The notes under the pieces were generated by a model that was given only the letters and a program-made list of their open reading frames with translations, was not told where the DNA came from and made no database searches. From NCBI GenBank assembly GCA_946965045.2, contig OX337240.1, positions 372,001 through 436,000 on the forward strand: 64,000 nt of DNA, given 5' to 3'. The DNA comes from Epithemia pelagica. Lineage: Eukaryota; Protista; Bacillariophyta. A program made the position numbers and the translations under genes. Positions 13,777 to 54,642 of the stretch are shown in pieces; positions within the stretch are counted from its first letter, which is position 1; each line of letters begins with the position of its first letter.

Positions 13777-14250
13777 CAACAATTTACACACATACCCAAC
13801 AATCAACCACGAATGCAGCAGCGTGAATCACCGGGCGAAGTGCCAATGCATTCGGAGACACCACAAACAGCACACAGATTCAACAATCAACCACGACCGC
13901 AAGAGGACCGTGGAACACAACCGACAACAATTTTCACACATACCCAACAATCAACCACGAATGCAGCAGCGTGAACCACCCGACGAAGTGCCAATGCAAT
14001 CGGAGACACCACAAACAACAACAGATTCAACAATCAACCACGATTGCAAGAGGACCGTGGAACACAAGAGCGTGAAACACCACGCCGTACCGGGGGAGAT
14101 GCCAATGCTGACAGAGACACAACAACGCGATGCACAGCAATCAAACTACCTAGTCCGTTCCCACCAGCCCACGGCGTGCAGTCTATTTCCACGATCTTTC
14201 AAGCACCACACATATTCAACAATCAAACACGACCGCAGCGTGAAACACAA
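13777..14250 (+). repeat. ~148 bp tandem repeat (13777, 13925) with sub-repeat caacaatcaaccacga
   Basis: Visible duplicated units; the sub-repeat occurs at ~13797, 13881, 13946, 14028 and degenerately at 14217. Confidence 0.88.
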
Positions 14251-37369: not shown

Positions 37370-37635
37370 GGTGCGTTATTACTGTCGGTCGGAGCAAACG
37401 AACGAGACTCGCCAGCAGCAAACAGTAGTAGAGACGTCCAATTGGTGTCAATCGACTCTTTCTCTCCTCTTTTCAGACTCTTGTATTGATTCCTCTCTTG
37501 TTTTGTGAGATCCTCTTTCTTGCATTGGAAAGATACGGCATGCAACGAACCAACTACGTATCGGCATGACAATAATGAGCGACTCGTAAACATGATTGAA
37601 ATGCGACCAACGGATCCGTCTATCACCCGCGTAGT

Positions 37636-38558
37636 AAATCTACTTTAATAGCTGAGGGTGGACGAGGAGGAGCTAGGGTGTGAGGAGTGGCTCAACTCCG
37701 AGAAGGGCAATAGCGACGAGGAGTGGACTGCCCCTGTGAGATCCGCCTAAGCGGATCGAGGGGGCAGTCCACGACGAGAAGCTATTGCCCGACGAGGAGT
37801 TAAGCCACGAGGAGCGCCCTGCGACGAGGAGTCCCCCGGGGCTATTAAAGTATGTTAGCTTCCTTTGTCAGAAGGAGTCGTGCCAGCGCACGCTAGGTAA
37901 TTTTCAGTCTTCCTAAGTGATCGGCTCTCTCCTTCGATACTTAGGAGTCGAGAGCCAAATTATTTTTACACAATTTGGCTGGCCCAACTTTTGATAGGGC
38001 ACTAGGTAATCTTTGATTTTTTGTAAATAGCCATGTCACTTGAGTGGTCACATCCGAGTACATCGGATGAATAATAACGGTTTATGCCTAAGTAACATTT
38101 GTATTACATTTATGGAAGGCCAATCAAACTCCGAGGCGTGCCTCGTGTATAAATAAGACAACAGAATACTTACGAGTAGAGTCAATGAATGTCCCCGATT
38201 ACCCCCACGCCTCTTCTCTCCTTTCCCGTTCCCGACCCGAACCGACCACGACCACTGAATAAACGACACAAACACAAAAACAATGGGAAAGCTGACCAAG
38301 GTGAGTCCTCCTTCTCCGGGAGGATGGAGGATGTATCCATAATCCATCCACCAACAAAAGCTCTCCCAACTCCCAACTCACAATGATGGTGGATTGTTGC
38401 GAATTTCGAACCTCTGTCCATTGTCCATTCCTGGCCGTCTTTTGGTTCGTTTTTCGTTTCGGTGTTTGGGTGGTGCTACTTTTTGTTTCTTTTCCCGGGC
38501 TATTTTGCATGATTACACTAGAATAAAAAATCTACGTACAGTAATTTTAGGGGCTTAG
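37636..38558 (+). mobile_element. Non-autonomous relative of the Crypton-like element (right end 38558 or ~38616)
   Basis: Preceded by GTAGT (37631-37635) and starts with a rod homologous to 52188-52391. The 3' block tacactagaataaaaaatctacgtacagta matches tacactaaaataaaaaaccgagtacagta of the full element. GTAGT recurs at 38559-38563. Confidence 0.7.
37641..37852 (+). other. Rod-shaped hairpin A with periodic GA-rich internal loops
   Basis: Nested stems 37641-52/37841-52, 37687-99/37796-808, 37705-14/37781-90, 37723-34/37761-72, 37740-46/37751-57. Confidence 0.92.
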
Positions 38559-39151
38559 GTAGTGTGAGTGTGGGGAGTGACTTACTCCTCAGTGAGTCCT
38601 CAGTGATTGGGGAAGGGTAGGACGACGAGTGGTAAAGGTACCTTTTCACCGACCATGACACAAAAGATCCGCTCTCATCATATCTCTATTCTACCTAGAT
38701 AAACAGCAGCAGCACATCTTCAAAAAATGGCTCGAACGAATCAGCAGGCCATCCTCTGTAGGAAACCAATACTTCAATAGCCTGTGTGTATGGTAACGAT
38801 TTCTTTGCGAGACGGGCAAGAGTGGATCAACCATGCAAAACAACAACTACACAACGAATGCGATCGAATAAGGGATCGAACGGCAAGTTGGAAGTACGAA
38901 GCACAAAGGCAACCCTCGACAGGCCAGTCAAAGAAACCATTCCACTCCTCGTCAACACGAGTCTTTTCGCAGGAACAACCTTCCAAACATGAGTGTGTGT
39001 CTGTCTCTGGCCTTCGCCCCACACACCACACGAGCGCAACTGAAGTTCGTGGATGAAGGAATCAACGTACGCTATCCATATTCGTGTCACTCGCGCTCTT
39101 GGATTTTCAAGAAAACACCACATTGGGAATTGGCTTTAACTTATCAGAACC

Positions 39152-44400: not shown

Positions 44401-47400
44401 CGGATTGGCCAGAGGAATCAGACATAGCCCTTCAAGACGAATCGGAACGATCCAGAGGCCTCATTATGCTGGAGCCCTTTAAGAAGGCGTTTCCCGATCT
44501 TCGAGCAGAAATTGAAAAGGCCGTGTTTAGTCCACAGCAGCATGTAGAGTGTGAATACGTCGATTCCGTGTCCAGCTGGTCTACGACGACGGTGGATATC
44601 CAGATACAAACGAAACTCAATGCAGCAAAGACGACATTGGGCATAGCCAAGCTCCATCCGCTGCAAGAACGAGTCTGTGCGCACATAATAAAAAATCAGC
44701 TGGAAGACGTTGTTGTCAACGCTCCTTGTGGCTCTGGCAAGGTACGTTCGTTGTGATCTTACACCGTTTTGCCTTGTCTTGGTATCTCACTGTTCACTGG
44801 CTTGTTATAGAGCATGTGTTTTATGGTTCCCGCTGTCTTATTTGGAGGTATCACACTTGTTGTCGAGCCACTTAGAGCCTTGATTGACAGCTTATTCCGC
44901 GAATTACGGAAACGCAACATTAACTGTGAAAAACTCCTTAGCAACGAAGCAGCAGGACATAGTCAAGCTCTGAGCGCGTATAACCGTTTATGTACTTTAT
45001 TGGATGAAAGATTGGACGGCAAACCACTCGTCATTCTTACCACACCAGAACTTGTTTGCACGGGCGGTACAATGGAAATCCTGGGTAATCTACAAGAACA
45101 GGGAAAATTGCGAAGAGTTGTTGTGGATGAGTTCGATTTATGGTACGTGAATTTAATTGATTTAAGTTCGGCTTGTGTCACAACTTCTCCGTACACAAGG
45201 ATTACTCATATGGTTGTTTACTGGAACTTGTGGAATACCTCAGTATCGAACCAAAGGAGAAGGAAGGGACTTGTCACCGACCAGCTTTTGCCGAAATTGT
45301 TCCTCATATTCGCAGAGTGCTGACAAGGACACCAGTGTGAGTATCAAAAGTTGAATGTACTTGCGAGTATGAAAGAAGCCCTCAATTTGATCTCCTTATC
45401 CAATGCACTCGCTCTGTTGGATCTCTTGTCCCCAGAATGTTTCTATCTGCCACGGCCTCCAACAGTGCCGTGAAACTCGTGTCATGGAGCCCCTCAGGGC
45501 AAAAGAAGCCAAAGTTGTTTCTTCACAGCAATCCGCTTCCGCATAATCATTTCTATCGTGTAGAGTCAAGGTCTATGACATGGACCGATGTTGCTGCAAG
45601 AATTGCCAAGATTCTGTCTGATTATGCCCGGGAACATCCAGAAGGTCCTCAGGCAAAGGCTCTTTGTTTCTTCGTTGGTCGAGCAATCGTGGGAACCTTT
45701 AGTGATTTATTGAACGAAAAGAAAATCACCTCTCTTGCTTATGTTGGGGCAGAGACAGAGAAACAAAAGCAACGAAACAACACAATCCTTCGGGAGTTTA
45801 AGGAGACTGATGTACAGGTTTTGTGTGCAAATTTAGCTCTGGGCCGAGGAGTAGATGATCTCCCAAAGAATATCCGATTTTGTTTTCATGTCCAAATGCC
45901 AGAATCTCTTCGTAAGTGCGTGCATAAGCGCCGTTTCCTCTCCGGTATAATTGAGGTTCTCATGTTCTGGCAGCTGAATATTTGCAACAGACAGGCAGAG
46001 CAGGCCGTGACGGTGGAGCGACTTTCTGCTACATGTTCTACCGTTCCGCTGACCGAAGTCGCATTGAGAATATTCTGGGTGGTAGGAGAAAAGAATTAAG
46101 TCACTATCAGCGCAGAGCTCTGGACCTAGTCAGGGAATATGCAATAAATGGGACAATGTGCCGTAAAGAAGCCCTGGCAAAATGCGCATTCGTTGGTGAG
46201 CCAACGCATGTTCGTTGTACGCATCCAGGGAAAATTCGGTGCGATAACTGTCTTGCCAGTGATTGTGTTTTTTCAAAGCCGAAAGACACTGGATGGCTCT
46301 TGGATGTAACAACCAGTATTCACAGTTTTCTTCTGAGAGCCAAATCGAAGTTTATGGTGAAAAATGACTTGAGGGAACAAGACCTACGGAAAGAATCCAG
46401 TGCGTGGCATTGCATCGCGCGAAATATTGAAGAGTTGTCTCCCGATCTTCAGGATAAGAAGTTCCTTCAATCGCTAGTTTCCGGGGGCCTAGATTTTAGC
46501 CTTCTCCATGACTTGGTCCGGTATATGAATGATGTATGTGTTCGGAGTGCCACAAACAAGACTCGCTCCGGACTAATTGATCATATTCGATCGAAGAGGA
46601 GTATCAAACGTTTTCTGTTTCAAGCATCACTTCCGCTAGAAAGCTTCAGTCAAGACAGGGTTCCGATATGTGTCTCACCGATTAAAGAAAACCGCGAAGA
46701 CGTACTCGAAATCGTTGGAAAGAGACAAATTTCAATATTGCTTCAGTACTTTCTCCAGAAAGGGATCGAAACATGGAACCGCAATACTAATAGCACGATC
46801 TTTGATCGTTCACTCGATCGGGAATATAGCATTGGCGAAACCTGCGAGGATGGCAATGATGCTGACGCCAATGCATTCAAAGCAGCTCTGCACTTCGTCT
46901 CAAAGGATCCACGCCTCAAGTCTCTGGACCTTACGAAACTCTATGATGCCCACAAACACGGTTGCGGTTTGTACTGGTCCGCCTCTGTCGAAAAGGATGG
47001 ATCTCTCAACATCTGTCATCCGGAGATAGCATGGGATCGTCGTATGTATCGTAAGTTTGGAGCCGACCGGTTCTTGACGGTACGCGTCAATAAGCAAGTG
47101 AATATCCAACAAATAAAGGAGCTTTTTGATGGCGATGGCATATCCAAGGGACACAAGGCACTTCTCTTTGGCCGGACATATCGTTATCTGTGGTGTAAAA
47201 AAGAAAAAGATCCACAGCAGTTTGTTCTGTTTGCGGAAGAGGGCCCAGGCTTATCCCCAACCTCAGTGTCTGACGTCCTGAATTGGGCAATACCTCATGA
47301 TTTAAATGGTTCGCTATCCATTGCGAAGCGATTAAAGAGGATGAAACTTTGGTTTTCTACGACCATACCGACCGCATGTTTACCGGCTGGAAGTGTACGG

Positions 47401-47415
47401 ATTGTTCCTGACTAC
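41487..47415 (+). CDS. RecQ helicase-RdRP fusion gene, 5' part (exons 41487-43305, 43386-43977, 44066-44741, 44811-45142, 45244-45336, 45436-45911, 45974-47415)
   Basis: RecQ motifs APCGSGK|SMCFMVPA, VVEPLRAL, TTPE, VVDEFD, LSATA, LALGRGVD, QQTGRAGRDG, and Zn-binding CRK...CDNC. These lead into an RdRP N-terminal region (RKFGADRFL, KRMKLWFSTT). All junctions are GT-AG and in phase. Confidence 0.85.
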
Positions 47416-48204
47416 CATTGGTCCTCGGGAGGGATGTAGGATCCCTGCACGTGCCTATTTACTATAGCCCATTTTGTACTGTACTCGGTTTTTTATTTTA
47501 GTGTACGTATGTATTTTAGCGGTCGTGGGAAATTCCGAGCGTAAAACCAGGGTCACAAAATGGATCGAAACGCAACCAATACAACAACGAGAGAAACCGT
47601 AGTGCATGAACCAATGAACCAAGGAACAAACGACCATGACAATCAAACAAGCGAGGCAACAAGCACAACAGCGAGCAAAAGCAACCAACAATCAACCAAA
47701 AAGGACAACCAAGGCAATACAATCAACAAACATCAAAGAAGCAGCATGGTAGAACAGCAGCGAGCGAAAAACATAAAGCATCAAGAGAGACAAGCAAAGC
47801 ATCAAACAACGAAACCAAAAGCGATACAACAATCAACCAAGACAAATGACAAAGCAACAATCAAACAAAGGCAAAAACCCACGCAATAAGCCAACAAAGG
47901 CAAGAAACAACAATAGAAACAGAGACGACGAAAATGAAACAAACATCAATCCAACAAACACAGAAACATAACCAACAACCAAACAGAAAGAACAACAGAG
48001 CAGACCGAGAGAAAAGAGAAGCAAGACAAAGGTTAGAGATGCATTGATAATGGAAATGGATGCAACAATCAAAAAGAGCAAAGACAACACTTACGTATTG
48101 AAGCGATCTACACGCAGAGCTCAAGCAACAATCTGCAATGAAAAGGAAGCAGTGAGAACATAGAAAAGACAAGACAACAATCAAACACAGAAAACTTACC
48201 TAGT

Positions 48205-51200
48205 TCAGTAGTATCGTCCACCATGGTGGTTGTGATTGTAGTGATCACCACCATGGTGGCGACTGTGGTGACGAGGATAGTAGGACTCGGAGCGGTGGTG
48301 GTGGTATGAGGAACTGTATTTGGGAGGAGGGGGCGAAGGGTGGAAGTGCTCCACTCGTTGACGGTACACTGCCTCCCCAATCAGACGAGAAGATGGAGGA
48401 GGTGGTGGCGGAGGCGTGTACGAGCGTGGAGGTGGAGGTGGAGGGGTCTGTCCACGAGGAGGATAGTAGTTGTTGCGTGTGGGAGGAGGAGGTGGACTCC
48501 AGTTCACCATTGCCCCATTTCCATTGTTATAGGAAGGCGGAGGAGGGGGAGAACGACGTTGTGATTGGGCGTAGTGGTTGTTGCGTTGGTCGTAATGGCC
48601 CTGATGGCTGCTTTCCAATGATCCGTGGTGGTGGTTGCTGTGATTGTGTTGGTCTTGATGGCCGAGGTGGCCACTCTCCCACGATCCATGGTTGTTGTTG
48701 TTGTGGTGGCGGGGGCGTTCGTCGTAGTACGACGAATGGCTGTTGTTGTTGTTGTGGTGGTGGTAGTGGCTATCGTCGTATGGTGGTCGACGATGGTTGT
48801 TGTTGTTGCTGTTGTTTTGACACTCGTAGTGGGGAGGTCGGCCACTGTTATTGTTGTTGTCGTTGTAGTTTTGGAACTCGTAGGGCGGTCGGCCGTTGTT
48901 GTTGTTGTTGTTCTCGTAGGGAGGTCGGCCATTGTTGCGAGTGTTGTTGTTGTTGCTCTCGTAGGGTGGTGCTCCATTCTTGTTGCTCTCGTAGGGTGGT
49001 CTGCCAGTGTTGTTGCTCTCGTATGGTGGTCGGCCATTGTTGTTGTTGTTGTTGTTGTTGGAGTTGTGAGAGTTGTTGTTGTTTTGGTTGCCACCATCCC
49101 CGTCGCCCCAATCAAAGCCTAGCGGAGAGAACGATGGAGACGAATCGTTGGCACCACCACCAGCAGTAGGAGCATCGGACGAATGATTCGGCGCTACGAT
49201 CAGAAAAGAATGACAGAAAGGTGAGAGACTGATTTCGAATGAACAACAATCAGACAACAAACTTACGCGACGACTTCTTCGGCTGTTCCACTTTGTCTTC
49301 TGGGGGGATGTACCAGTTTGCCGTCGAAGCCTTTAACTTCGACGCGGTAGAGACTTCTTGGTACTCATAATTAATCTCGGCCGATTTATGACGGCCAAAA
49401 TTCGTTGCCAAGACTTGTGGCACTCCGCAATTCGCCACTTTAGAGATGCCCGTTCTACGAGCAGTTCGACCGGTGAAGTTTCCATCTTCGGGGAACTTGC
49501 ATCGAGCAGCCAGCACCTTTGTGTTGTTCGCCGCGAAGTTGCTGCCGAGTTTGCCACCAGGACGCATACCCGTGGCCGGGTCGAACTTTTCTTGGGCACG
49601 GTCCTTCACCAGGTCAGTCCAACCCAAGTGTTTGGACCCACATTTTCGGGCCGCGATGATTTTCTTTGGGGCTTCGTACAAAAACAAGAGTCCCTTCCAG
49701 CCCGGCGGATGCGCTACCTTTCGGTAGTGCATAAATAGCTTATACGTACTCCACGGGTCTGCTTCGTTTTCTATGATCATGTTGGACAGCGAGTCATTCT
49801 CGCGGCGAAACGTAGGCTTGGCTAGCGTCAATTTTACGTTCTTGTGGTGGCCAGCATCAAGTGGGATGATTGCTGGCTTGCCCGCATGTTCTCCGTACGA
49901 CTCATCTAAACGAGCTACGAATCGAAAGTCAGTAATCCTTGCTAAATGAATCTGAATAGAAGTAGCAAGAACATCAGTAGAGGTGAGAAAACCAGTAAGA
50001 AAGCCCAACAATCAACCGTTTGGGTACGTACCTCTAAACAGCGAAAGCTAATATCGCGACAGAGCGAGTAGAAGAATAGCATTAGCAAGTCTTTGAAGAC
50101 TTGGAACGGATTCAAGGGAGGATCTGCGAGGTTGCGGATGTGATACTGATCATCCATACACACGCTGGCCCGTTTCGGCAAGCGACCGAACTCGGGACGT
50201 GCTTTCGCCGTCTTTTTCCAAATCCATTCTAAATACGCTTGGTACGAACCTCTGCCCTTGAGGTCCGTTTGCCCGATGCACACGCCGTTGGCACGCAGGC
50301 AAGCAAACAGATGATTCAATACCTTCCCAGTCGTGTTGGGTTGGTAATGAAACTTTGGATCGTGGGGATCATCGCGCCCCTTGACATACCCCGCCATCCG
50401 AAGATTCATGCAGAAGATAGCTAGCAAGGAGTTAAGTAGCCCCAACTTTCTTGGCGTCTTCGCCCCGCGTAGAGCAACGAACAACTTGGGGACTTTCAGT
50501 CCATCTGATCGTTCAGGGTCGACCATTAGCTTCGCGAGTCCTCGGTAGTGTCGGTGTCGACGAAGCACATCTAAGAAACGCTGGACCGACTCTTGTTTTT
50601 CCTTCGAGTACGACTCGGAGCAGCCAGCAAGCTCGCGAACATCATAGCCATGATACTCGTCCGCAAATACTTCATCGCTGAGTTCAGCGAACTGACCGAA
50701 GTATTCCAACAGGTTGTCGTCATGTGGTTCATCAAGTGGCAGAGTCTTGTATTCGGCGATTGAGATCTCGCCTTGCTCGTTCTCTTCGAGATGGCGTTGC
50801 TCCACCATTGCACGAGCAATGGTCTTCGTATCTAGTGGAGACGGAGGAGGAGGAGGGGCACGCCGAGCAAGAACACCACGTGCACGGGCATTTCGGCGGC
50901 TTCGAACGGAAACAGAAGGAACAAAATCTTCGTCCGCTTCAAGATCATCCATTTCCATTCCTTCAAAGATACTGTCATCATCGTCCGAACCGTCATCAAG
51001 GAACGGATTCGTTTGATTGTTCCTGTGGAAAGCAAAGGAAGAATGTAAGAGGGTGGAAGATGCAACAATCAAATAGAGCGACAACGCAACAACGAACTCA
51101 ACAACGAACGCAACAACAACGAAACTTACTTTGAACGGTGGCGTCGACGGTGAAGAAGAGGAGGAAGATCATCGGGAGGCGGTGGGTTGTTCTCCTTGTC

Positions 51201-51395
51201 GGCTTCCGACGGAGGAGGTGGACGAGGAGGTGGATTCTTCTTCTTCGGTTTTTGCTTCTTGTTCTTGTTGGTCATTCGGCGAGCGACCTTTCGGACGGGG
51301 GAGGACGAAGTTGCAGTTGGTGATTTGCTGCTGGCTGCAGCCAGTTGCCGTTTGGAGCGGCGAGTTGGCTGTTGCGAGGGAGGACTGTTGGCCAT
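48205..51395 (-). CDS. Tyrosine recombinase, Crypton/DUF3504-like (exons 51395-51130, 51022-50032, 49951-49267, 49193-48205; ~976 aa)
   Basis: YQPNT; box I DISFRCLE|IHLARITDF; box II FTGRTARRTGIS; GRHKSAEINYEY (H...Y). Three phase-compatible GT-AG introns and a N/P/H/Y-rich C-terminal tail. Confidence 0.82.
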
Positions 51396-52187
51396 GGTCA
51401 AGAACTTCCTGTCGTTGTTGTCGAAATGGCAAAAGTATGAGAAATGACAGGAAATGGAAGGATTTGAGTGACCATTGGAGGGCAGGCGCGCAGGAAGAGG
51501 ACGAAATTGGAAGAAAGGAAGACTTTCCACCATGGGAATGACGAAAAAGGACGAAACAACAATCAACTTACATTCTGTCGCACCGCTCAAGGAACCAAGG
51601 ATCGGAATGCAAGCTATGGAGATCAACATCTCCTTTGCATTCGTCGATCCTTGGTTCCCAGGTCCCATGGTACCTGTCGACCGTTGGGTCGACCGGTACG
51701 AAGACCATGGACGAGGGGTCTTCCCAAGGATCATAATTTGTCGACAACGTCGACATCGAAGACGAAGAAGACGACGACGACGATGCAAGAGAGATGGGAG
51801 ACGCTGCGGTGCCACGATGGGATGCGGAGCGGGGCATGGGGCTGACAATGGGACGGCTCGTCATGGTGGCAACCCAACAATCAAATGGATGAGGAAACCA
51901 CGACGACGATAACAACGACAACAGCGCCTACAACGATGCCTCCCACAATTTCAAACAGGTCCCTATGTAGCACCTAAGTATTTAGTTCGTCCCTAAATAG
52001 TGAGACCCTATGTGATCTTGTGTTCCTAAATAGTGAGAACCTAAGTGTCGTAAGTAATTTCCCCCAATATGTGACTACTTAGACTAAGTAGAGTGACGAG
52101 TTAAAAAAATCAACGGACGATAAGCCTAACAAAATATAAATCCTATGTGACACTTACATCCCCCCTCGGACGCAACGGAAGCGTACA

Positions 52188-52391
52188 ACATCTGCTCCTC
52201 GTCGTGATTCTCGTCGGGGGCACTTCTCGGGGGCCTAACTCCTCGGCGGGCAATAGGTCCTCGTCGTGTACTGCCCCAAATCCGCTTATAGCGGATTTGT
52301 TGGGCAGTACACTCCTCGGACCTATTGCCCTTCTCGGAGTTAGGCACCCCTCGTCGTGCCCACTCCTCGGATCACTCCTCGGAGCAGATGT
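52188..52391 (-). other. Rod-shaped hairpin B at the 5' end of the YR element
   Basis: Seven nested stems (e.g. 52188-98/52381-91, 52248-60/52318-30, 52266-76/52302-12, 52277-86/52290-99). Five 5x5 loops separate them and read GAGGA/GACGA-type on the minus strand. Confidence 0.93.
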
Positions 52392-52399
52392 AGAACTAC

Positions 52400-54642
52400 T
52401 ACAACCTTTGTGACAACTTTTCGGAAATTGATGGTTGTGGCTTGATATCCCAAGATGCATTGCATGTAGTATGGGATTGTTACCGCGCGAAGACTTCTGA
52501 GAAACGGTCTGATTCATGCATATGTCCGCACACAGGGTTTCAAGGCCGTCTTGGGGGTTTCAAAGGCACCTGGGTTCTGGACCGTGCTTTGGGAACTGGT
52601 ATCGTGGTTCATTGCAGAACAAGTCAGCACAAGTTTCAAGTTCCACAATCCTGTCTGCAGTCGACATCAAACAGAGCTGACTCGATGGAAGGAAAGGTTA
52701 CAGAAGACGACCACAGTGTATTTGAAGTGTCGTCTTGGGACAAGGATCCAACGCCAGCCAAATTGAACGTTCGGTTGATCCAACTGCTAGAACACTATGG
52801 TGCTTCTTGGGAATTCTTCGAGGAGAACTGTTTGGAACCAGCAATAAAGGATTTAGAAGAAATGATGGGATCTGGTCCAGAATCGAAAAGAGCGTGGTTG
52901 AAACATTTGAAAGAGAGACAACGTTCGAATGTACTGAAATCATGGACCGACAGCAGAAAATGCCTGAAACTGTTGTGCGCAAATGTGGCTACGTCCGACC
53001 CGGAGCTCTGTCGATTCAAGAAAAAGCTCGTGTCTGAAATGTTCCGCTCCCTTCAAAGCAAAGCACATTACCCTCTATCTGGCTGTGTTTATCTTCGAAT
53101 GTATGGTGATCACACATTGCTGCTGGAAGAAGGCGAGGCGTTTGTGGCATGCAATGGCGTTCGGACCGGGCTTGACGCTTTATCCGAAGAGATACTTGCC
53201 ATGAGGTCGCCGTCGTATTTTGGGGGAGACATGAGACGACTGTCTTTGGTGTCATTGGATGAGTTGAAGAAGCGATCAAGAGATCCCGAACATGCAAAAC
53301 GTTTTCCTTCTGGATTGCGTAGTGAGCTGGTGCGATCCGGTCAAGAAGCAGTAGAGTTTTTTGCTTGTGAGTAAAAGAAGGTAACGAAGGATTAACGGCG
53401 TGTCCTTTCATGTTCAGTCGTGTCGCTAATTGGTCTTTCTTTCAGGTCTTAAAAACTGCATTGTGTTGTGTAATAAGGGAAAACGGAGCGAGGCAGATCG
53501 AATGTCTGGTGGCGACTACGATGGAGACCTTGCATGGGTATGTTGGAACCAGAAACTCATGGAATCCTTGACACAAACCAAGATTGCTGCCGAGGACATT
53601 TGTGATATAGTGGATAACCCCCTAGAACTGGGGAAACGATCTGCATGGGACCCGGACAATCAGGTGCATGAACTTGATTATGCTCGAAAGTTTAAAATGC
53701 ATCATGTCACACTGGGCAAGCTGTCCAATGCGTTGGACGCTGCGATTGACCAATTTGGCTTTGGATCTCCTCAGGCACAAACGTTAGGTCGCGCACTATT
53801 TCTACAAGTGGATGTTCCAGACACGCGTAAGTCAAGCTTGGCTTGGTTTCTAGTCGAAGTTTCGAGTCGTTGCTTATCCATCTGGTTTTCGTTTTTTGCT
53901 CACAGCACTATTGCGACAAGAAGAAGAAGCGACCCTGCTTGAATCGATCAAGACTCCTCATTGGGCGCTCAAGGACAGGTTCTCGTCTCACCGAAGCTAC
54001 AAATCCAACAAAATGCTGGGCACTTTGTTTGATGCGTTGAAGAACCGCATGGAATTGGCCATGTCTGGATCAGAAAGTGTCGACGGAGAAATGAAGTTGG
54101 ATCCCCTCATTTCAAAACTTGTGGACCCGTATCGGGGCAACCAGGAGTGGCGGCAACTCGAGATGCGAATGAGAACGGCCGTGGAACTCTATATTACAGA
54201 AAAGGCAAAATATTGGGAAAACCGTTCTGTTGGCAGTCACGACAGGATCGTTGCGGATGCGTCCTTTGGCAACAACAAGAACGACCAAGAGAAGGAACAA
54301 GCCGCCGAAGAAGGACGCCGCCACTATGAGACATGGAAGCTCGAGTACTTTACCCGGGCACGCACAGAGTTGGGAAGAGGCGAGGAATCTCGCAATCAAA
54401 CGCAGCTTTGGGAAGTCAAGCCCCAGGTATGGGGGGCCACACTGTACATGGTGGGTTGGGAATGTCATCAGGAATGGACACACAAGCGTCAAGAGACGAG
54501 TCATGGCGTCCAACACAAACATGCCGGTGGTCCCATGGAATTCGTTTGGGGCGTTGCCGAAGGAGAACTATTAAAGGACGTGTTCTACACCAAGAGTTTG
54601 ATTGTTGCCGAGGAAGTGGAAGCTCTTGTCCTTGGTATTTAA
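52400..54642 (+). CDS. RecQ-RdRP fusion gene, 3' part: eukaryotic RNA-dependent RNA polymerase catalytic domain (exons 52400-53366, 53446-53826, 53906-54642)
   Basis: DGCGLIS, FQGRLGGFKGTW, RTSQHKF, RSPSYFGGD, NCIV and catalytic SGGDYDGD. Confidence 0.92.

Follow-up and report, generated by a model that had tools for sequence, protein, structure and literature searches.

We analysed a 64,000-nucleotide (nt) stretch of the genome of the diatom Epithemia pelagica (C16:372001-436000, hereafter the window) together with the genome that surrounds it, searched as 60.5 Mb in 23 contigs. Between positions 47411 and 52399 of the window, a single host open reading frame (ORF), which encodes part of an RNA-dependent RNA polymerase (RdRP), is split by an insertion carrying a minus-strand gene for a predicted tyrosine recombinase (YR). 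In our view the insertion is, with high likelihood, an autonomous diatom DNA transposon of the Crypton class, whose only gene is the YR and which integrates at the sequence C^NAC without duplicating its target. The features at the locus, in window coordinates, are as follows.

45982-47415 (host portion to 47412), plus strand: upstream host ORF, with the N-terminal part of the RdRP (PF05183 positions 10-152, E = 2.8e-10).
47412-47415, plus strand: left junction C-TAC, a target C followed by TAC supplied by the element; CTAC in nine of nine left junctions.
47413-52399, minus strand (strand of the gene): mobile unit of 4,987 base pairs (bp), with ends common to the copy on contig C3 and eight other insertions; size taken from empty sites.
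47416-48204, minus strand: 3' region, rich in A and C on the plus strand; it also holds two further GT..AG intron-like units.
48205-49193, minus strand: exon for a low-complexity C-terminal tail rich in N, P, H and Y; stop codon at 48205-48207; open in the window copy.
49267-49951, minus strand: exon 3, the rest of the YR catalytic domain, with K37, RxxR at 162-165, H188 and Y197 (exon numbering).
50032-51022, minus strand: exon 2, an N-terminal domain ending in the first catalytic Arg motif, RCLE.
51130-51408, minus strand: exon with an ATG at 51395, its start moving to 51408 should the upstream exon be coding; splice sites and phase verified.
51572-51864, minus strand: probable upstream coding exon of 293 nt with an ATG at 51864; ORF and ATG kept in the C3, C8, C9 and C17 copies.
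52150-52399, plus strand: right-terminal 250 bp, kept at 90-94% identity in 1.6-kb non-autonomous relatives.
52188-52391, no strand assigned: imperfect palindrome of about 205 nt, forming a rod with regular internal loops and stopping 8 nt short of the right terminus.
52390-52402, plus strand: right terminus, GTAGAACTAC at 52390-52399 followed by the target's own TAC at 52400-52402.
52397-53374 (host portion from 52400), plus strand: downstream host ORF in the same frame (PF05183 positions 164-411, E = 2.7e-34).

The word ACTAC stands at 47411-47415 and again at 52395-52399, and at the element ends we found no terminal inverted repeats (TIRs), no long terminal repeats (LTRs) and no terminal or split repeats of the DIRS type. 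A preliminary description of this DNA, made from its letters, had read these as the limits of a 4,979-bp insert bounded by a 5-bp repeat. The insertion, the repeat positions and the lack of TIRs and LTRs all hold; the size does not, as the empty sites described below give 4,987 bp. That the window holds a real insertion is evident from the whole-genome DNA search. A second full copy lies on C3, with 41 differences over 4,989 bases (99.2% identity), at an unrelated locus on a different contig and with flanks wholly different from those in the window. An older lineage, at 77-80% identity, is present on C17, C8 and C9. Four non-autonomous relatives of 1.6 kb, together with a C4 copy of which only the right end is known, have only their ends in common with the element, the four 1.6-kb relatives retaining its left 98 bp (47416-47513) and right 250 bp. 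The exact right end, GCAGATGTAGAACTAC, occurs 12 times genome-wide, and these represent 10 independent insertions, identical in their ends but unrelated in their flanks.

We tabulated the flanks of these insertions, the left ones being known for nine and the right ones for all 10. First of all, the left junction reads N-CTAC followed by CATTGG (CGTTGG in two copies) in nine of nine, where N is A, T or G, whereas the right terminus is always ...GAACTAC, within GTAGAACTAC, and is invariant in all 12 exact right ends. Only CTAC is thus constant on the left, and the element itself supplies the initial A of ACTAC on the right, so that ACTAC is not the repeated unit it had been taken for. Second, the 3-mer that follows the right end is TAC in five insertions, GAC in four and AAC in one. 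The two flanking units therefore match each other in only half of the insertions, a pattern that a true target-site duplication would not give. The proposal that ACTAC/GTAGT is a fixed core rather than a random duplication was thus right as to a fixed feature, and no copy has the unrelated flanking 5-mers that were named as the sign of a random one; the core sequence itself is C^NAC.

The empty sites bear this out. These are unoccupied paralogous repeat copies around three non-autonomous copies, which we call C8b, C17b and C11. At C8b, the left flank, ending in CTAC, and the right flank, starting with TACGTACC, both match some 25 repeat copies at 94-100% identity, with an overlap of exactly 3 nt between left and right matches in each copy checked. 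C17b lies in a very abundant repeat, and dozens of its copies, 99-100% identical, likewise give a 3-nt overlap. C11, whose right unit is AAC, has one paralog at 98-99% identity, again with a 3-nt overlap; here the right-flank alignment begins at its first base, and the left-flank alignment has a single mismatch. Read most simply, C11 has C-AAC at its empty site and C-TAC at the occupied left junction. The interrupted host gene adds a comparison of its own: a paralog 68-70% identical reads PDF-DLG at the insertion spot and the predicted empty site, with the DNA sequence CCTGAC-TAC-AACC, reads PDY-NLC, of equal length, while duplication of ACTAC would put one extra codon into the predicted empty site. 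Because the empty sites hold the 3-mer once, the mobile unit measures 4,987 bp and brings its own TAC, in the layout TAC-CATTGG ... GTAGAACTAC; it can equally be written as 47416-52402, since the 3-mer TAC leaves a 3-nt boundary ambiguity. The element thus enters C^NAC, where N is T, G or A, without target-site duplication. A simple CTAC core, whether duplicated or shared, was considered and dropped, as the empty sites show one 3-mer and not CTAC plus TAC.

These same observations bear on the idea that the element is a cut-and-paste transposon with a target-site duplication of 3-5 bp, in which the YR-like gene is a passenger. ACTAC is indeed exactly repeated in the window, and targets that read TAC give an outcome resembling a 3-bp duplication. 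Yet TAC is the left unit throughout, five of the 10 insertions have GAC or AAC on the right, and the empty site of C11 holds AAC. The element moreover has no TIR, and a Pfam search of its checked ORFs of at least 60 amino acids (aa) was blank throughout, with no DDE or other transposase domain and no reverse transcriptase (RT) or RNase H in any of them. We regard a cut-and-paste origin as extremely improbable.

Sister families follow the same rule as the element with terminal words of their own, ...ATTAC|NAC on the right and C-GAC on the left, or TTTAC in a 0.9-kb element at 37631. The last of these had been said to be preceded by the same 5-mer, as evidence of a common core. GTAGT is present at 37631-37635, but two of its bases are the final ones of that element and the other three are a target TAC, and the element's own repeat is TTTAC, so that the 5-mer is not a shared core. 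This relative (37631-38621) lies in reverse orientation and has the rod palindrome conserved; its left boundary was read by eye. As a further observation on the targets, GTAG, the reverse complement of CTAC, occurs 4-7 nt upstream of the target CTAC in four of nine sites, as compared with 6% of CTACNAC sites in the background (post hoc test, binomial p = 0.0016), and the target sites may thus be weak palindromes.

The gene can be followed through four minus-strand exons, 51395-51130, 51022-50032, 49951-49267 and 49193-48205, which are joined by GT-AG introns of 107, 80 and 73 nt and stay open over 2931 nt, that is, 976 aa plus a stop. This is the reading frame given in the preliminary description, and it is open as was seen there; whether it is the complete frame is another matter. 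Upstream lies an exon with a GTAAGT donor at 51571 and an intron at 51571-51409, which splices in frame to 51408, and its indels among copies amount to 3 and 5 codons. Since this exon is open in diverged copies, with indels in multiples of three, it is probably coding, and the gene would then have five coding exons and 1078 aa rather than four and 976. The junction of exons 2 and 3 agrees with transcript-derived protein: exon 2 aligns to residues 222-501 of a 1027-aa protein from an Entomoneis paludosa transcript, with the same terminal RxxE, and residue 14 of exon 3 aligns to residue 515, so that the two are colinear. Exon structure and intron positions are unchanged in all copies, which are 66-100% identical. 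Judged from the ratio of nonsynonymous to synonymous substitution rates (dN/dS), which is 0.08-0.10 for exons 2 and 3 between lineages, the recombinase gene is under purifying selection. In the C3 copy a stop lies 25 codons short of the gene end, the C8 copy has a frame break in exon 3, and the older family copies carry stops or frameshifts.

Sequence searches and folding were run on individual exons, and the structural model is that of the exon 3 domain, without the first catalytic Arg (Arg I), which exon 2 encodes. Among 38 paralogous matches to exon 3 in the genome, K37, R162, R165, H188 and Y197 are invariant in 18 paralogs, and the spacings from R165 to H188 (23) and from H188 to Y197 (9) are the same as in Cre. 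The end of exon 2, RCLE, and the start of exon 3, IHLARITDF, fit YR box I around Arg I, and the Arg of RCLE is conserved in relatives. A profile search of 1.84 billion representative proteins returned 196 relatives, mostly unnamed proteins from marine metagenomes but also some from diatom transcripts (Entomoneis, Cylindrotheca). Sub-threshold matches to PF00589, at 17-19 bits against a cut-off of 27.1, appear in 8 of the 82 relatives scanned and cover the part from HxxR to Y. In a 72-row profile run against the PDB, the sole match was XerA (E = 0.13), with R aligned to R, H to H and Y to Y. With the same 72-row alignment, the AlphaFold (AF2) model of the domain reached a predicted local distance difference test score (pLDDT) of 81.9 and a predicted template modelling score (pTM) of 0.77; a model made from a shallow 18-row alignment had a pLDDT of 42.7 and was unusable. 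When the better model was compared with 48,161 PDB chains by VIA-align, 22 of the 22 best rows were YRs or type IB topoisomerases, with Cre at Z 6.8 (root-mean-square deviation 3.2 over 136 residues), an archaeal Xer at 6.7, XerA at 6.2 and QRICH1 at 6.0. In the ESM Atlas, clusters of PF00589 and PF12012 were found at 0.96. The DUF3504 domain (PF12012) of QRICH1 is Crypton-derived.

Several results weigh against this assignment. The hidden Markov model search for DUF3504 and phage integrase, which had been suggested at the outset, came back empty, as Pfam gave no match for any exon, taken singly, even at E up to 10. Searches of exons 2 and 3 against the PDB by phmmer yielded noise only, and a profile of the 18 paralogs found no match there. 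Foldseek against the PDB gave nothing significant, its list being headed by QRICH1 (E = 0.31), Cre, XerH and the Tn1549 integrase. The VIA Z-scores all lie below 8, where the tool warns that single matches may be fortuitous, and the first catalytic Arg lies outside the structural model. Each Z-score is thus moderate by itself, and the case is carried by the unanimity of the VIA list together with the motifs. On motifs and predicted fold, the protein passes as a YR, and the model folds as one, where failure to align to the YR fold had been named as grounds for abandoning the idea. A word-based protein search with the relatives' alignment added only seven further unnamed proteins, and when the query was a read-through ORF of 593 aa from a sister family, this kind of search found nothing, probably because low-complexity words swamped it.

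With these elements in place, the class of the transposon can be addressed. The YR is the sole mobility enzyme; TIRs and LTRs are lacking; the short terminal repeats are fixed; the element is mobile; and its introns are retained. The RT and RNase H of DIRS and Ngaro elements, and their inverted or split terminal repeats, were not found. The lack of RT, DDE transposase, TIR and LTR, along with introns kept in every copy, therefore indicates a Crypton that moves as DNA. The Crypton class itself is already known in stramenopiles, and the element is a further Crypton, so that the preliminary description of an apparently intact, intron-containing YR transposon of Crypton type is borne out by motifs, fold, enzyme content and introns. 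Two points temper this reading. The C11 empty site was read from alignment arithmetic, and both C11 and C17b from coordinates and scores. In addition, no circle, excision footprint or transcript of the window copy was seen.

A different origin for such a gene is a decayed YR retrotransposon of the DIRS or Ngaro kind, or a host YR gene that has been domesticated and no longer moves. DIRS and Ngaro elements also carry YR genes, the older family copies have stops or frameshifts as noted above, and activity today is putative. Neither version accounts for the rest of the evidence, however: RT, RNase H and DIRS-type repeats are missing, and introns at the same positions in all copies argue against an RNA intermediate. 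The insertions, furthermore, have empty paralogous sites, some of them in repeats that are 99-100% identical, and the catalytic residues are intact, unlike those of DUF3504. We thus consider decay or domestication very unlikely, and retain the reading as a Crypton.

We infer that the element is active at present, because the two full copies at unrelated loci are 99.2% identical and because non-autonomous relatives sit in repeats that are themselves 99-100% identical. Two non-autonomous copies are nested in young repeats (L015, C8:1203832-1207080, and L017, C17:2127180-2130427), of which one is LTR-like, with copies paired 7.2 kb apart, and the other is very abundant (576 candidates) and 99-100% identical. 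On C9, three copies of the older lineage (C9:2964486, 3006353 and 3047533) lie about 42 kb apart with identical flanks and therefore reflect a segmental triplication after one insertion; the third has about 2 kb of additional DNA within its right end. Two candidates were rejected along the way. The 1.6-kb relatives have long stretches free of stops, but these are translations of low complexity and not genes. Matches of about 178 bp to the right end are not free-standing miniature inverted-repeat transposable elements (MITEs), since the homology runs on upstream; they come from a sister family that is commoner and ends in ATTAC, of which they form the right ends.

How does this element compare with known systems? 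CryptonS elements occur in oomycetes and one diatom (Phaeodactylum tricornutum), and have terminal direct repeats of 5-6 bp, mostly TATGG (Kojima and Jurka 2011, PMC3212892). The same study reported no work on Crypton transposition and found no conserved nucleotide features in Cryptons. As in CryptonS, by their published description, the host here is a stramenopile, the YR is the sole enzyme, TIRs and LTRs are lacking, copy number is low, short terminal direct repeats of fixed sequence are taken as the recombination substrate, and an extra region lies C-terminal to the YR. Unlike in CryptonS, the unit in common is C-TAC / C-NAC, and a covarying palindrome of 205 nt at the right end sets the element apart from published Cryptons. 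Fungal Cryptons have terminal direct repeats of 4 or 6 bp, seen as recombination substrates, and a circular intermediate was proposed for them (Goodwin et al. 2003, as summarised in PMC3212892). The short direct repeats and the proposed circle are thus common to both, while the hosts differ and the GCR1_C DNA-binding domain that this summary gives for the fungal elements was not detected here by Pfam on the exons. With Cre, Xer and lambda Int, the predicted protein has in common the fold (Z 6.8-4.2), the order K / RxxR / H / Y and the 23/9 spacing; it differs in having Arg at the first HxxR position and a similarity below family thresholds, and in that its partner sites share only about 4 nt, against an identical overlap of 6-8 bp.

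The pattern at the flanks is that expected of a conservative site-specific exchange. In the most likely mechanism, excision would yield a circle that brings the right end ...GTAGAACTAC up against the left end TAC-CATTGG..., with a junction predicted to read ...GATGTAGAACTAC-TAC-CATTGGTCC... (...GAACTAC-TAC-CATTGG...). The junction put forward earlier, gatgtaga-ACTAC-cattggtcc, is 3 nt too short and is to be replaced by ...GTAGAACTAC-TAC-CATTGG.... The recombinase would then cross the joined-end junction (...CTAC|TAC-CATTGG) with a chromosomal C^NAC (C|NAC). If the exchange takes place just 5' of the 3-mer, the left junction would receive the element's TAC and the right would keep the NAC of the target, with nothing duplicated. 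The signals needed in cis would be contained in the 98 bp at the left end and the 250 bp at the right, the latter including the 205-nt palindrome. It is the circle, the exact cleavage positions and their stagger that we infer in this scheme, whereas the ends and the single 3-mer of the empty sites are shown by the flanks and their alignments.

The palindrome itself is a conserved structure. Folded as DNA, it has an energy of -73.7 kcal/mol (z = -12); families with just 66% identity between their recombinase genes retain it, and both sides have changed in 15 of its 65 pairs. When the ends are joined in silico, base pairs form between the left 65 nt and the sequence immediately upstream of the rod, which adds 43 pairs and about 5 kcal/mol. 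In the literature searched we found no paper describing such a palindrome in Cryptons. Folded hairpins are the YR substrates of integron attC sites and CTX phage attP, and by analogy these resemble the present element in having a conserved imperfect hairpin beside a sharp crossover, with little sequence in common with the target; the rod here is far longer and the host is a eukaryote, and the likeness is one of analogy only.

This raises the question of whether the element recombines as a folded single strand, with the palindrome as substrate, one pair of strands exchanged and replication resolving the product. A 205-nt rod with compensatory changes that ends 8 nt from the crossover would suit such a route, as would the extension of the rod by 43 pairs across the joined ends. 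The crossover is also sharp, with only C..AC common to element and target, and no identical overlap of 6-8 bp would be needed. The energy gained on joining the ends is only about 5 kcal/mol, however, and strand bias or a single-stranded intermediate would not be visible in data of this kind. Double-strand YRs that tolerate heterology, of the Tn916 or Tn1549 type, would fit too; alternatively, the palindrome could serve as an array to which protein binds or as a structure in the transcript. We thus hold the folded-strand route to be unlikely, though less so than the two other alternatives weighed above; if true, it would make this the first eukaryotic transposon of that mechanistic type, like integron cassettes and CTX phage. 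The family offers an apparently intact autonomous copy, non-autonomous partners of 1.6 kb, exact empty sites and a precise, falsifiable junction. Such a copy, limits for the cis signals, empty sites and a predicted junction together make the Crypton mechanism directly testable in a diatom. What the present analysis adds is the empty-site evidence for duplication-free integration at C^NAC, the corrected junction, a likely extra exon and the position in an RdRP gene.

As for that position, the insertion splits the RdRP domain of the host gene between positions 152 and 164 of the PF05183 profile. RNA-dependent RNA polymerase genes are linked to RNA silencing. The element thus interrupts the catalytic domain of a silencing-linked gene, and the transposon has therefore hit a candidate anti-transposon gene. 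A weak match to a RecQ zinc-binding domain lies further upstream of the interrupted gene, and the paralog mentioned above, which is uninterrupted, lies at C16:511279-511844.

Two further observations concern the element's own sequence. A family with only 47% identity in the catalytic exon likewise has, after the recombinase, a low-complexity tail rich in P, H and Y (L049:2799-3671; 48208-49191 in the window), and a disordered C-terminus therefore seems to be a kept feature. Finally, the window contains the 9-mer TGATTGTTG 23 times, where 1.3 occurrences would be expected (47686-51883 and 13797-14225). Outside the element the 9-mer shows no link to splice sites, as in a tandem array at 13.8-14.2 kb; within the element, one TGATTGTTG lies 6-58 nt past the donor of every predicted intron, including the two intron-like units of the 3' untranslated region.

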